From positions 124,001 to 188,000 of IMG/VR virus record IMGVR_UViG_3300005537_000001: a DNA stretch of 64,000 nucleotides; one strand, written 5' to 3'. Position numbers and translations under genes: made by a program. Within the stretch, counting starts at the first letter, position 1, and each line of letters starts with the position of its first letter. The notes below the pieces were generated by a model. It searched no databases. It was not told the origin of the DNA and was given only the letters and a program-made list of their open reading frames with translations. Positions 199 to 28,560 of the stretch are shown here, piece after piece.

Positions 199-272
199 TC
201 GCCCGTAGCTGAGTGGTTTAGCGAGGAACTCTAAATTCCGGTACGTGGGTTCGATTCCCATCGGGCGATCCA
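199..272 (+). tRNA. Amber suppressor tRNA (anticodon CUA), probably Gln-type body
   Basis: Acceptor TCGCCCG/CGGGCGA, D arm GCT/AGC, anticodon loop CT-CTA-AA in GGAA/TTCC stem, GGTTCGATTCC T arm, T73 then CCA; U1-A72 and U73 as in this phage's tRNA-Gln(CTG). Confidence 0.9.
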
Positions 273-1596: not shown

Positions 1597-2249
1597 CGTA
1601 GAACCGGTCAATAACTCTCGATCACCTTCGCGAACAGATGCAAGCTTGTTTTCAGGCTCCGAATCTTAACATGTTGCAGCACGGAGAGATGGTTCATTCT
1701 CAATACGCACAGCTCATCGCAGCGCTCAACGCGAATGATACTCAGTACAAAGAACTTCGCGACGTTTATGCTCGGTATAGGGATAAGCTTCCCGCACCCG
1801 AAGTGCTAGAGCGCTATCATACATACCATGACTGCGGAAAACATCTCTGCGAGATTATCGATGGGTGCACCGGTAAGCGACAATTTCCCAACCACGCGGA
1901 AATTTCAGCCAAGCAGTATGCGACCATCTTTCCTGAAGATGGGTTTACGAAGCAGCTTATCGCCATGGACATGAACTTTCACATCCTGCGCGGTGATGAC
2001 CTGATTAGAACCTGTCGAAGCCCGTTCGCGCCAATTCTTTACTTCACGGCGTGGGCTGAGATAAACGCGAACGCGGAGATGTTTGGCGGAAGACAGTCGG
2101 AAAGTTACAAGATTAAAAGATCCAGATTAATTCAAGCTGGAAAGAAGCTACTAAACCATAAGGAGAACAACAATGTGGCCATTCTCAATGTTCAAGCGCA
2201 GCCCAGTGCAGGAGAAGAAAATTTATCGGTGCAAGGTGTGCAGCTATGA
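1593..2249 (+). CDS. HD-domain phosphohydrolase with in-frame amber codon at codon 3
   Basis: AGGAG SD, ATG ACG TAG (1599-1601) in frame with ORF 1638..2249; H...YHDCGK...FPNHAEIS motifs as in HD domains; ATGA overlap with the upstream stop. Confidence 0.75.
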
Positions 2250-2681: not shown

Positions 2682-2759
2682 GTCTCCGAGGCGAAGTCAG
2701 GTAAACGCAGCGACCTCTAAAATCGTTAAGAGTGGGTTCGAAGCCCACCGGAGACGCCA
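2682..2759 (+). tRNA. Second amber suppressor tRNA (anticodon CUA), amino-acid identity unclear
   Basis: Acceptor GTCTCCG/CGGAGAC, D arm GCG/CGC, loop CT-CTA-AA, T arm GTGGG-TTCGAAG-CCCAC, G73 then CCA. Confidence 0.85.
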
Positions 2760-16328: not shown

Positions 16329-16416
16329 CAGGAATTAGCTCATTGGAGATACGAGAGAGCACTCGGTTGCCGAAAGCACCGAGAGGTTGTTGGTTCGATT
16401 CCAACATTCCTGACCA
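16329..16416 (+). ncRNA. tRNA-Pro-like body with anticodon loop replaced by an extended CGAAA-capped hairpin
   Basis: CAGGAAT/ATTCCTG-A-CCA; CTCGG-T-TGC-CGAAA-GCA-CCGAG. Confidence 0.65.
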
Positions 16417-19285: not shown

Positions 19286-19379
19286 GCCGAGGTAGCTCAG
19301 AGCTGGTCAAAACCCAGCGCCGGTAGAGCGGGTGCCCAACAGCACCGCGTCGTTGGTTCGAATCCAACCCGAGGCGCCA
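19286..19379 (+). ncRNA. tRNA-like RNA: D-loop hairpin insert, 6-nt anticodon loop, GA/GA mismatches in acceptor stem
   Basis: GCCGAGG/CCGAGGC-G-CCA; GCTGG..CCAGC insert; GGTGC-CCAACA-GCACC. Confidence 0.65.
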
Positions 19380-19551: not shown

Positions 19552-19651
19552 GCCGAAGTAGCTTAGAGTGGTGCGCAAAATAAATCCACGTCGGTAGAGC
19601 GTCCACCCGGAAACGTGGAAGACGATGGTTCGAATCCATTCTGAGGCACCA
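19552..19651 (+). ncRNA. tRNA-like RNA paralogous to 19286-19379 (D-loop insert, 8-nt anticodon loop)
   Basis: GCCGAAG/CTGAGGC-A-CCA; GTGG..CCAC insert; TCCAC-CCGGAAAC-GTGGA. Confidence 0.65.
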
Positions 19652-20429: not shown

Positions 20430-20506
20430 ATGGGTGTGTCAGGTAATTGGCTAACCGGCTGCGCTCCAAACGCTTCGATGGGGTTCGAATCCCTCCACCC
20501 ATGCCA
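20430..20506 (+). tRNA. tRNA-Trp(CCA) with only 3 canonical anticodon-stem pairs
   Basis: ATGGGTG/CACCCAT-G-CCA; CTGCG-CT CCA AA-CGCTT. Confidence 0.75.
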
Positions 20507-23550: not shown

Positions 23551-25092
23551 ATGAACATTTTGAAAACCGTTGTCGCCCTCAACGAGGATGCTCCACCATC
23601 CGGTCCTAAAGAAGTTATCGATCGCTTGAGCAAAGCGCTGGTCGGTAAAAAGATTACCGCTTTTGGACCTAACGGCAGAGGACTTTGGGGTGATCACCAT
23701 GAGGTTCAATCCTACCGCATCAAGCGCGTTGTTGGCCACCTTGGTCCAATGGATGATGGTGAACCGGAATGGGGTAACATTGACATTCACCTAGATGGTT
23801 ACCACGCCGGCGGTGTCAAGGGTAAGGATGAGAAAGGAAATCCAACCATCCTCGGCGGAATGATCTACACCGATAGAACATTCGAGAAGCACCTGAAGGC
23901 GCTGCTTCACTCAGTTCCAGCTATGAAGTATGTTAAGAGCATTGGTTATTCAGAGCAAGGAATGCAGGGTAAGAATTTTGTAAACCTCGACATCGTATTC
24001 AACAAGAAAGAACTTAACAACGCGATGGCTGACAGCCTTATCCGCAAGGGTGGGAAGCTTAAGGAAGATGCCGCCGAACAAATGCCCGCCGCTCCGAAGA
24101 AGCATGAGCCACTCCCAAAAATAGGTCAAAACATAGTCGAGCACCTGCAAGCTCTGCAGGCGACCTTGGACATGCTCTGCATCAAGACCCGCGGCTTTTC
24201 ATTCAACGTTGTTGAAGAAAGCTTCTACGAATTTCACTCATTCTTGAATCTCACCATCGACTATCTCCACAAGGAATCATACGAGGTTGCCGAGCGGGTT
24301 CGGTCGATCGACGCGATGGCCAACTACGCGCTAGCCGACGTTTCTAGCAAGTCAAGAATTAAGGACGCTGAGAAGCTGGTAACATCGTTCCCAGAAATGG
24401 TGAAGGAGCTTCTAGCTGACTATGAGATAGTTAGTGATTTGGCGCGCCGCATATTTCACATGGCCACCGAAGTGGTTGATGCTGGAACCATCGCGCTCGC
24501 TACCAGCCTAGCGCTGAAGATTGAGCATTTCATGTGGGAAATCCGGGTGATGGTTGGTAAGGATCCAGCTGACAAGGTTAAAGAATCTGTTTCAGAAGCC
24601 AAGAAGAATGATGGTGACTACGACATCCACGTCAAGAAGGTACCAAGCGGTACATACTACGGTAAGAATCTTACCCACACCATCATCGACACCAAGCACC
24701 CCGTCCTAAAGAAGCGCTACGGTGAAACTGGCGATGGATTATCCGCCGCCGCCCTAGCAACGATCAAGAAGGCGTACAAGGTTAAGGAAGCTGAAGAGAG
24801 CTTATGCTGTGAGTTCAATCTCGTTGAAGCTAAGAAAGCTGAAAAGAAAGATCCTTCAAGCGTAATCCTGGACATTGCGGTTCAGGGTGGTGGGCACAAG
24901 ATGGGAACCGATGAGGACACCATCAAGTGGGCCAAAAAATTTAACTGCACGGCTAAGAAGCTTAACACCGGCGGCCGCGGAGGCTGGCCAGAGTGGAAGT
25001 TTACCGGAGATCCAAAGGACATCCGCCGCCTAGTTACAAACTACACCGGTAAAGGCAACGACGTGGAATATCTTTTGGGACACGAGGATTAA
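23551..25092 (+). CDS. Multidomain probable virion polyprotein containing a Dps/ferritin-like domain
   Basis: Late-type promoter; LNE/LKE/VKE/VSE/LVE linkers; KTRGFSFNV..FYEFH...EVAERVR aligns with Dps. Confidence 0.75.
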   Translation: MNILKTVVALNEDAPPSGPKEVIDRLSKALVGKKITAFGPNGRGLWGDHHEVQSYRIKRVVGHLGPMDDGEPEWGNIDIHLDGYHAGGVKGKDEKGNPTILGGMIYTDRTFEKHLKALLHSVPAMKYVKSIGYSEQGMQGKNFVNLDIVFNKKELNNAMADSLIRKGGKLKEDAAEQMPAAPKKHEPLPKIGQNIVEHLQALQATLDMLCIKTRGFSFNVVEESFYEFHSFLNLTIDYLHKESYEVAERVRSIDAMANYALADVSSKSRIKDAEKLVTSFPEMVKELLADYEIVSDLARRIFHMATEVVDAGTIALATSLALKIEHFMWEIRVMVGKDPADKVKESVSEAKKNDGDYDIHVKKVPSGTYYGKNLTHTIIDTKHPVLKKRYGETGDGLSAAALATIKKAYKVKEAEESLCCEFNLVEAKKAEKKDPSSVILDIAVQGGGHKMGTDEDTIKWAKKFNCTAKKLNTGGRGGWPEWKFTGDPKDIRRLVTNYTGKGNDVEYLLGHED

Positions 25093-25100
25093 TATCGCAT

Positions 25101-25203
25101 AGAGATGTCGTATAATGGTATTACCCCGGTCTCCTAAGCACTTTCCTAAAGAGAGTTTTTAGGAAAACCGATGACGGGAGTTCGATTCTCTCCATCTCTG
25201 CCA
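25101..25203 (+). tRNA. tRNA-Trp-like gene with a 29-nt insertion in the anticodon loop
   Basis: AGAGATG/CATCTCT-G-CCA; removing 25135-25163 gives CCGGT-CT CCA AA-ACCGA. Confidence 0.7.
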
Positions 25204-25219
25204 CGTATAGGAAATAAAC

Positions 25220-25540
25220 ATGATAGAAAAACCTATAAGCATTGTGCCACTTGACAACATTGACGAGATAGTTGCTGACATCACAACAAAGCTATCTGCA
25301 GAAGATAAGGTTTACATTGCCAATGGTACATTGCGTGAAGCAAGATCTCTCCACCACTCTCTTGGTCAATGGATCCGAAATACGTATTCTCTCTGGCACC
25401 TCAGCCCGCTAACACTCCGTTGGCGCTCACAACCAGAAACGCACGACATTCGCGATGGTGTAGATTACAGTCAAGATCACCCAGATCAAGTTTCCGATAA
25501 AATCATCGAAGCGCTGTGGTACAAGCTTCAGGACTGCTGA
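25220..25540 (+). CDS. hypothetical protein
   Basis: LHHSLGQWIRNTYSLW..HPDQVS. Confidence 0.65.
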   Translation: MIEKPISIVPLDNIDEIVADITTKLSAEDKVYIANGTLREARSLHHSLGQWIRNTYSLWHLSPLTLRWRSQPETHDIRDGVDYSQDHPDQVSDKIIEALWYKLQDC

Positions 25541-27220: not shown

Positions 27221-27766
27221 ATGAGAAGAACGTTCGATCCAGCTGTAAACACGATCTACGTAGATTTGGACGGCGTGCTCGCAGATTTCGATAAGTTTGT
27301 TCTCGAAAACGTTGGTAGAACATTCCAACACCAGGTTAAAAACCTCGCGCAGGAAGATGCTGAAATGTGGAATTTCCTCAAGGGAGTGCCACAGCTGTAC
27401 CTCAACCTAGAACCCACCGCGTACGCCCACCAGCTTTGGAATCACATAATGTCATTCGGCGCCAACGTAGAAATCCTCACTGCGATTCCGCGCCGCACGT
27501 TTATCACCGAGGCTGAACAGAATAAGCGAGATTGGGTTGCCCGTCACATTGATCCGAGAGTGAAGGTCAACATCGGTCCATTCTCCGCCGACAAGTGGAA
27601 GTTTGCAAAGCCAGCTGACATTCTGATTGATGATCGATCTGACAACATTCAGCAGTGGATAAATGATGGGTTTGGCATCGGTCTACTTCACTACTACACC
27701 AATCATGAAAATACGATCACTAAGCTCACCGACATAGTGACCGAGCGAAACCGACTTCACGGTTAA
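27221..27766 (+). CDS. 5'(3')-deoxyribonucleotidase (HAD)
   Basis: YVDLDGVLADF, ILTA, LIDDR. Confidence 0.85.
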   Translation: MRRTFDPAVNTIYVDLDGVLADFDKFVLENVGRTFQHQVKNLAQEDAEMWNFLKGVPQLYLNLEPTAYAHQLWNHIMSFGANVEILTAIPRRTFITEAEQNKRDWVARHIDPRVKVNIGPFSADKWKFAKPADILIDDRSDNIQQWINDGFGIGLLHYYTNHENTITKLTDIVTERNRLHG

Positions 27767-27834
27767 ACTCAACCTCCATCGGCGATCTGATAAATAGATC
27801 AATCAGTCGTACTCTCAAGTTTGGAGATTATCAA

Positions 27835-28560
27835 ATGAAGCTTAACGAACTTATGGACCTGGATTCCATGAAGGGACAAGTAGACCCAGCTGAAATGCGC
27901 CGCCGCATCGTCAAGGGTGGAAATGATCCATTTGGTAAGATAGCTAAGTCATCCAAGAAGGATGACAAGAACAAGAAAGCTGACATCAAAAATGAGAGCT
28001 ATGAGGACGACCTCGTAGAAGGTAAATCAGATCCTCAAGCAAGGGCATATGCCGCTCTTGAACGAAAGGTTCGCCCTTTCGTAACTGCGATGCTCAAGAA
28101 AAATGAACGCATGAGCGATGCCGCGCTTAACCGCAAGATTAAGGCGTGGTTGACCGAAAAGGGAATTGATAAAAAGGATCACAGTGAAGCCCACGGCATC
28201 ATCATCGACATGCTTGGTGACGCCCGCGAGATGGGCCAAACTACGATTAAGGAAGGTAGTCAGATAAATGGCAAGGTGCGGGGCAACGTTGCGGTGCTTT
28301 GGAATATATCTGCTGGCGAGTATCCACACAGTCAAATAGGTATGGAAGAGGAAGAAGTTTCGAAGTACAAGAAGGATCTTCCAGCCGACGTTTGGAAAAA
28401 ATATGAGCATGCTTGTTCAGGTAGCACGTGTGAACCTCTTACCGTGTATCATCGCCACGGCACCGACAAGCAAGAAATCGTTGATCATCTAGTGCAGCTT
28501 GCTAAAAAGTTTAAGGGTGGAGAAAATGATCGGCCACCGCACGATGTAACTTTTGGATAG
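27835..28560 (+). CDS. Probable virion internal protein (ends TAG, in frame with next gene)
   Basis: MKLNEL; LVE/IKE sites; late-type promoter. Confidence 0.7.
   Translation: MKLNELMDLDSMKGQVDPAEMRRRIVKGGNDPFGKIAKSSKKDDKNKKADIKNESYEDDLVEGKSDPQARAYAALERKVRPFVTAMLKKNERMSDAALNRKIKAWLTEKGIDKKDHSEAHGIIIDMLGDAREMGQTTIKEGSQINGKVRGNVAVLWNISAGEYPHSQIGMEEEEVSKYKKDLPADVWKKYEHACSGSTCEPLTVYHRHGTDKQEIVDHLVQLAKKFKGGENDRPPHDVTFG

Follow-up and report, generated by a model that had tools for sequence, protein, structure and literature searches.

A conserved hairpin insert within the anticodon of a jumbo-phage tRNA-Trp gene, predicted to require protein-dependent splicing

The introns known in the tRNA genes of bacterial systems are group I ribozymes of about 200 nt or more, found in the anticodon loops of tRNA-Leu(UAA), fMet, Arg(CCU) and Ile. 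Protein-dependent tRNA splicing is considered an archaeal and eukaryal trait and is not known from bacteria or their viruses. In that pathway, a short intron in the anticodon loop adopts a bulge-helix-bulge structure, with both splice sites in 3-nt bulges flanking a 4-bp helix, and is removed by EndA/Sen before the halves are joined by RtcB or Trl1. Two further systems are relevant. Intervening sequences of bacterial 23S rRNA are excised by RNase III without rejoining of the fragments (reviewed in PMC8708148), and phage T4 repairs tRNA-Lys cut by the anticodon nuclease PrrC with Pnkp and RNA ligase 1 (Rnl1). Inserts in the anticodon region of tRNA genes have been reported in Lak megaphages as "enigmatic" introns, with no structure or mechanism (PMC6784885). 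Literature searches for a described phage or bacterial hairpin tRNA intron, or for tRNA splicing by RNase III plus a ligase, found only the Lak report.

The DNA analysed here, referred to as the window, is a 64,000-nt stretch corresponding to bases 124001–188000 of a 368,054-bp IMG/VR phage record with direct terminal repeats. The record carries about 45–53 tRNA genes and a tmRNA. A sequence-only reading had singled out window positions 25101–25203 as a Trp-like tRNA gene with a 29-nt intron-like insert in the anticodon loop. That observation is confirmed, and its coordinates, arithmetic and hairpin description are all correct. The locus and its neighbours comprise the following features.

25101–25203 (+), whole gene of 103 nt, predicted precursor of tRNA-Trp(CCA) with an encoded 3' CCA
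25101–25134 (+), 5' exon, tRNA positions 1–35: acceptor strand AGAGAUG, D arm, 5' strand of the anticodon stem, and C32 U33 C34 C35
25135–25163 (+), 29-nt insert (predicted intron), starting UAAG and ending UAGG, folding as a hairpin
25164–25203 (+), 3' exon: A36 A37 A38, 3' strand of the anticodon stem, 4-nt variable loop, T arm, 3' acceptor strand, G73 and CCA
25132–25138 (+), 5' strand of the predicted junction helix (U33 C34 C35 plus intron nt 1–4), with the 5' junction between 25134 and 25135
25158–25164 (+), 3' strand of the predicted junction helix (intron nt 24–29 plus A36), with the 3' junction between 25163 and 25164
25140–25156 (+), predicted upper stem (25140–25145 with 25151–25156) and 5-nt loop (25146–25150) of the intron hairpin
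23551–25092 (+), upstream ORF of 513 aa with a DNA-binding phrog_3636 domain, its stop codon 8 nt before the tRNA
25220–25540 (+), downstream ORF of 106 aa (phrog_16192, unknown function), starting 16 nt after the CCA
20430–20506 (+), the only insert-free Trp(CCA)-like gene of this phage, with A1-U72, G73 and CCA but an irregular long anticodon arm

The gene reads as a cloverleaf. The acceptor strand 25101–25107 pairs with 25193–25199, the D arm spans 25110–25124, the anticodon stem is formed by 25126–25130 and 25167–25171, and the T arm spans 25176–25192. G73 lies at 25200 and the encoded CCA at 25201–25203. C27-A43 and U13-U22 are mismatched. The loop region 25131–25166 holds 36 nt instead of 7. 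Removal of 25135–25163 leaves the 7-nt loop CUCCAAA with anticodon CCA, and this cut between positions 35 and 36 is the only 29-nt deletion that gives CCA in this sequence. Removal of 29 nt at the canonical 37/38 site leaves CUCCUAA with anticodon CCU.

The Rfam tRNA model (RF00005) scores the gene at 45.2 bits against a gathering score of 29 (E 2e-6 for the window), aligning model positions 1–71 and leaving a 31-nt block of the anticodon loop unaligned. No group I intron, ribozyme or other RNA family matches, even at E up to 1. ARAGORN misses the gene at default settings. At relaxed settings it calls Pro(AGG) with a 27-nt intron at position 32, a placement supported neither by homologues nor by alignment with intron-less genes. 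The anticodon arm with the insert folds to −18.3 kcal/mol, with z = −4.26 against shuffles. The DNA is identical across the region in an independent Logan assembly of the probable source run, with no variants or gaps, and in a second IMG/VR contig from another sample, and is thus not an assembly artefact. The gene is packed between two co-directional ORFs, and a promoter and terminator scan around it gave nothing above shuffle level.

The insert is conserved beyond this phage. Pattern scans using only the anticodon-arm letters and the T-loop found 12 further copies (about 10 distinct sequences): two in other IMG/VR phages, namely a complete 350-kb jumbo-phage genome (G001) and a 55-kb fragment, eight in further distinct metagenome contigs, and two in MAG contigs. 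Each of the 13 copies reads CUCC, then 26–31 nt (28 nt in nine of them), then AAAACC. Most sit in dense tRNA arrays typical of jumbo phages, and one sits beside a GOLLD RNA. The sequence-only reading had named a private duplication absent from relatives as grounds for refutation, and this condition does not hold. Among cultured phages, no close relative was found in the INPHARED collection by megablast or blastn, and only intron-less tRNA-Trp genes matched. A search with the upstream 513-aa protein returned only a near-identical contig and two distant, uninformative loci.

Eleven sequences were aligned and tested against a structure made of the cloverleaf plus the extended anticodon arm. In this alignment, 92.7% of cells are paired, compared with 72% in shuffles and 40–54% when partners are slid by 1–3 columns. 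Changes on both sides occur in 24 of 35 pairs, a level reached by 0 of 500 shuffles. The acceptor stem is 98.7% paired and all seven of its pairs covary, as do 3 of 4 pairs in the D stem and 4 of 5 in the T stem. In the anticodon-plus-insert helix, 10 of 19 pairs show compensatory change, including the first intron pair, which is U-A in eight sequences and A-U in two. The columns equivalent to the upper stem (40–46 with 54–60) also covary. The junction-proximal letters, GGTCTCC and GGAAAACC, were fixed by the search patterns. Their invariance is therefore partly by construction, and the three junction pairs U33-A36, C34-G and C35-G cannot show covariation. Overall, the family is under selection both as a tRNA and as a hairpin.

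Several lines of evidence identify the tRNA as Trp. The exons of one family member from the pattern scans (L034) are 93% identical to annotated tRNA-Trp genes of Cellulophaga phages. In a joint alignment, the intron-less tRNA-Trp genes of Cellulophaga phage phi4:1 and Microbacterium phage Leaf show a single gap, exactly between CTCC and AAAACC. The window's gene has A1-U72 and G73, the identity set of bacterial TrpRS, and lacks A20, the major ArgRS determinant. Among the eleven aligned sequences, G73 is present in 9 and A1-U72 in 7. In G001, ARAGORN finds tRNAs for every amino acid except Trp, together with an intron-less Arg(CCU), and the insert-bearing gene therefore fills the one gap in the set. 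No TrpRS was found in the phage. In the window's own phage, the other two Trp(CCA)-like genes are both aberrant: 20430–20506 scores 26.7 bits, below the Rfam threshold, and genome 109626–109748 carries a ~51-nt insert and has no CCA end.

All 13 copies are predicted to fold the same way. Outward from the anticodon stem, a small internal loop places C32 opposite A37 and A38. A continuous helix follows, with the pairs U33-A36, C34-i(N) and C35-i(N−1) predicted in all 13 copies and i1-i(N−2) in 12 of 13, the exception being a single copy (L011). In eight of the 13 copies, the stem comprises 11 layers on both strands from the 5' junction to the terminal loop. The terminal loop has 3–8 nt and is a tetraloop in seven copies. 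In the window's gene, the helix of 25132–25138 with 25158–25164 is the same in the MFE and centroid folds, and a C/U mismatch separates it from the upper stem. The anticodon would thus be masked in the precursor.

The junctions were fixed independently by alignment with the intron-less genes. On the predicted fold they fall, in all 13 copies, inside one duplex and are offset by 2 nt, so that the excised hairpin and the remaining tRNA would each carry a 2-nt 3' overhang. This geometry is the hallmark of cleavage by RNase III-family enzymes, and a stem of about one helical turn above the cut also fits such enzymes. There are no 3-nt bulges and no 4-bp spacer, and the fold is therefore not a bulge-helix-bulge. 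Two other insert-bearing tRNAs of this phage (genome 107788 and 109626, with 51–52-nt inserts) do not form such a junction helix, and a mechanism common to all of its odd tRNAs is not supported.

Both complete phages encode a T4-type Rnl1. In the window's phage it lies at genome 273603–274622 and matches TIGR02308 with E 1e-48, below the curated cut-off, and phrog_562 with 9e-80 over profile positions 14–352 of 377. In G001 it lies next to the tRNA arrays and matches TIGR02308 with E 2e-91, above the cut-off. The best cultured match is Ralstonia jumbo phage RsoM2USA at 41% identity. Both phages also carry a Pnk-type kinase domain (phrog_505 / TIGR04075 Pnkp, E 1e-16) joined to an HD domain, fused in G001 and split into neighbouring ORFs in the window's phage (phrog_6931 and phrog_505), while the T4-type phosphatase domain is absent. 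By analogy with bacterial HD-Pnk enzymes, this pair may form a module that heals 2',3'-cyclic phosphate and 5'-OH ends. Such repair sets are frequent in jumbo phages as counter-defence (PMC7824862), and they show capability rather than dedication to this intron. A TIGR00324 search for EndA found nothing in either phage, whereas archaeal controls were detected. No RNase III was found in either phage, nor was RtcB in a weak search with a single E. coli protein. No Rnl2 match was found in the window's phage, although that model also matched no control genome.

A subgroup of copies has an intron starting AAUG, A73 and no encoded CCA, and occurs singly in Bacteroidota contexts. One copy lies in a 305-kb contig of a Chitinophagaceae MAG, near dapA and an RNase Z gene. 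That genome has a normal tRNA-Trp at its tuf locus and encodes RNase III, but no Rnl1 or RtcB was found in this incomplete MAG, in a search that did not extend to other ligase families. Another copy lies beside a Drt2 defence reverse transcriptase, a MobB relaxase and RadC on what looks like a mobilisable element. The class is thus not restricted to phages, and in bacteria it is an accessory gene in variable regions.

The locus is best explained as a working tRNA-Trp(CCA) gene whose anticodon is split between C35 and A36 by a hairpin intron of a conserved, previously undescribed class. In this view, a double-strand-specific RNase III-type enzyme, that of the host since none was found in the phage, would make the staggered cut, leaving C35-3'OH and 5'P-A36 held together by the anticodon stem, and the phage Rnl1, whose known substrate is a broken anticodon loop, would seal them. 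The analysis itself establishes the gene, its conservation and its Trp identity. The fold and junction geometry are predicted by thermodynamic folding and supported by covariation, and the ligase is identified by homology. Removal of the insert, cleavage by RNase III, sealing by Rnl1, charging by TrpRS and decoding of UGG are inferred, as the only public run found to hold this sequence is the source DNA metagenome. Post-transcriptional removal of the insert to give tRNA-Trp appears more likely than not, but the specific route through RNase III and Rnl1 remains tentative. Below the cut there are only three pairs before a 1×2 internal loop and the 5-bp anticodon stem, a substrate that RNase III may or may not accept.

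The interpretation offered by the sequence-only reading is partly supported. It correctly described a real tRNA gene with a Trp-type body and an insert that extends the anticodon arm into a long hairpin, too short for a group I intron, so that any removal would need protein enzymes. The RNA ligase it invoked is indeed encoded by the phage. Its alternative of canonical splicing to Arg(CCU) does not fit, whereas its suggestion of an unspliced decoy is not excluded.

It is possible, though unlikely on present evidence, that the insert is spliced by a different endonuclease. A phage- or host-encoded metal-independent RNase could recognise the hairpin and leave 2',3'-cyclic phosphate and 5'-OH ends, which the HD-Pnk module would heal and Rnl1 would seal, as in T4 anticodon-loop repair. 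The presence of HD and Pnk-type domains in both complete phages agrees with this model, since RNase III products would not need healing, and most phage genes are of unknown function. However, no candidate endonuclease was found, the 2-nt offset and the ~11-layer stem have no explanation in this model, and the healing enzymes are explained equally well by defence against host anticodon nucleases (PMC7824862).

An equally unlikely but surviving possibility is that the insert is never removed. The RNA could act with a masked anticodon as a decoy or sponge for a tRNA-Trp-directed nuclease, a modification enzyme or another tRNA-binding factor, or as a regulatory RNA. No spliced product has been seen, the bacterial copies occur as accessory genes beside a normal tRNA-Trp, once next to the Drt2 reverse transcriptase, and neither Rnl1 nor RtcB was detected in the incomplete MAG. 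Phage tRNAs are proposed to counter tRNA-targeting defences (PMC10264068). On the other hand, a decoy has no need to keep the exact halves of a Trp anticodon loop, a covarying acceptor stem, G73 and an encoded CCA, and in G001 the gene fills the single gap in an otherwise complete tRNA set.

Less likely still, the hairpin could be an RNase III processing site without re-ligation, yielding nicked tRNA or tRNA halves, or serving to process or destabilise the polycistronic transcript. The RNase III-like geometry, the tight packing between co-directional ORFs and the precedent of rRNA intervening sequences are compatible with this reading. However, a tRNA nicked inside its anticodon cannot decode, which conflicts with the conserved tRNA-Trp identity features and the lack of any other Trp tRNA in G001, and a ligase specialised for broken anticodon loops is encoded.

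A tRNA pseudogene disrupted by a small palindromic insertion is very unlikely. The rejection by ARAGORN, the two stem mismatches and several other aberrant tRNA-like genes in this phage could suggest decay, but the 13 copies in unrelated contigs show compensatory changes in every stem and a constrained intron length. Splicing at 37/38 to give tRNA-Arg(CCU) is the least likely reading: although the arithmetic works for this sequence and ARAGORN finds no tRNA-Arg(CCU) in this phage, the same rule would give Trp in three homologues and Arg in the others for one homologous body, A20 is lacking, G001 already has an intron-less Arg(CCU), and the intron-less relatives are annotated Trp with the gap at 35/36. 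A brief test for TAG recoding, prompted by CUA tRNAs, was not specific, and no alternative code is claimed.

More broadly, it is possible, though less likely than not, that bacterial viruses and some Bacteroidota elements carry a dedicated protein-only tRNA splicing pathway, in which a ~28-nt hairpin intron masks the CCA anticodon, is excised by RNase III and is followed by rebuilding of the loop by a phage Rnl1. Maturation of tRNA-Trp would then depend on a phage enzyme, acting as a timing or self-only switch for translation. This would be a third mechanistic class of tRNA intron beside group I and bulge-helix-bulge, and a physiological splicing role for T4-type RNA ligase 1. The restriction to tRNA-Trp might reflect gating of the single Trp codon, UGG, by a phage enzyme, or protection from a Trp-specific anticodon nuclease. 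The class is compact, conserved and easily synthesised, which opens a hitherto enigmatic phenomenon to direct experiment. Standard bacterial tRNA finders miss such genes, which makes phage tRNA sets look incomplete.

The locus can be compared with each of the known systems in turn. Like group I introns, the insert interrupts a bacterial-system tRNA gene within or next to the anticodon, but it is only 29 nt and has no conserved ribozyme core. Like archaeal and eukaryal protein-spliced introns, it is short, lies in the anticodon loop and is predicted to pair with the anticodon in the precursor, and archaeal tRNA-Trp is a classic intron carrier. It differs in its predicted continuous helix, its position at 35/36 rather than 37/38, the lack of an EndA match in the phages and its bacterial context (tmRNA, T4-type genes). 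As in 23S rRNA intervening sequences, a short extra hairpin in a stable RNA has both ends in one helix and could be removed by a staggered double-strand cut, but here the halves must be ligated to restore a 7-nt loop. The proposed sealing of a broken anticodon loop is the same chemistry as in T4 repair, and a Rnl1 homologue and a Pnk-type, putatively end-healing kinase are encoded here. In T4, however, the break is damage inflicted on a host tRNA, whereas here it would be a programmed maturation step of the phage's own tRNA, and the putative healing phosphatase is an HD domain rather than the T4 HAD-type domain.

The Lak megaphage introns are likewise inserts in the anticodon region of tRNA genes of very large phages, conserved across samples and matching no known intron family, a grouping that is only descriptive (PMC6784885). 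The Lak inserts sit in Phe, Gly, Thr and Tyr tRNAs and were placed at or next to the canonical site by a eukaryotic tRNA predictor. The insert described here is a plain hairpin of 26–31 nt, always in tRNA-Trp and always at 35/36, with a defined, predicted junction helix and a candidate ligase encoded in the complete phage genomes that carry it.

The window contains several further unusual tRNA and tRNA-like genes, located as follows.
Window 199-272: a tRNA with a CUA anticodon.
Window 2682-2759: a second tRNA with a CUA anticodon.
Window 16329-16416: an 85-88-nt tRNA.
Window 19286-19376 and 19552-19648: two tRNA-like genes with an insert in the D loop.
Window 20430-20506: a Trp(CCA)-like gene without the hairpin insert.

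The two CUA anticodons are amber-reading, and ARAGORN labels both tRNAs as Pyl. The related complete phage G001 has two such tRNAs as well. A crude ORF-cover test revealed a gene-poor stretch at genome 225-250 kb in the standard code. However, cover in this stretch rises not only when TAG is read through but also when TGA is, and stop-codon recoding is thus not shown. The phage also encodes a tmRNA outside the window, at genome 90242-90646, with the tag peptide ANDAFFGEELRLAA, which supports a bacterial host.

The two genes at 19286-19376 and 19552-19648 score 30.3 and 35.8 bits and carry a 24-29-nt insert inside the D loop. Both display tandem G.A / A.G mismatches at acceptor pairs 4-69 and 5-68, along with non-standard anticodon loops. 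They look like a separate class of modified tRNA-like RNA. The tRNA at 16329-16416 scores 50.6 bits against the Rfam model in the whole-genome search, but ARAGORN at relaxed settings can only label it "tRNA-???" with a 2-base anticodon. In G001, a 98-nt tRNA at G001:C1:62293-62390 (L017; Rfam 32.4 bits) has a long variable arm and an apparently 9-nt anticodon loop, and is not called by ARAGORN.

An HD domain plus a Pnk-type kinase (phrog_6931) is present in both phages, outside the window. It forms a single protein of 374 aa in G001 (G001:C1:221144-222268, minus strand), but is divided between two neighbouring ORFs in the window's phage, G000 (G000:C1:26171-26773 and 27262-27849). It is probably an RNA end-healing module partnering Rnl1.

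Three members of the hairpin-intron tRNA family on other contigs lie in the following contexts.
L025:4948-5045 (+): a bacterial copy, adjacent to a Drt2 antiviral reverse transcriptase at L025:2954-4531 (-).
L093:~1966-2065 (+): a chromosomal bacterial copy on a 305-kb contig of a Chitinophagaceae MAG.
L044: a member with a 31-nt insert in a ~30-gene tRNA array, with a GOLLD RNA at L044:13793-14246 (-) at the edge of the array.

The reverse transcriptase next to the L025 copy matches the NCBIfam Drt2 model with 398.8 bits, above its cut-off, and the PADLOC model with 6e-130. It lies ~400 nt from the tRNA-like gene on the opposite strand, with a MobB relaxase and RadC nearby. The tRNA-like gene may be linked to the defence system, or may instead mark an integration site. 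The L093 copy contains a 28-nt insert and A73 but no CCA, and sits among unannotated small ORFs beside dapA and an RNase Z gene. The same genome has a normal tRNA-Trp at the tuf locus. The GOLLD RNA of L044 (RF02032, 161.7 bits) contains an embedded tRNA.

The window's phage has three Trp-like genes, all of which are abnormal in the anticodon arm. In addition to the hairpin-intron gene at 25101-25203, the gene at 20430-20506 possesses A1-U72, G73, and CCA, but its anticodon arm is irregular and lengthened, and it scores below the Rfam threshold (26.7 bits). The other Trp(CCA)-like gene, at genome 109626-109748 (G000:C1) outside the window, contains ~51 extra nt and has no CCA end. A Phe(GAA)-like gene at genome 107788-107910, also outside the window, contains ~52 extra nt. 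In the Phe(GAA)-like gene and the Trp(CCA)-like gene at 109626-109748, the insert is located at the 5' side of the anticodon loop. These two inserts do not form the junction helix seen at 25101-25203, and they resemble the longer Lak-type inserts.
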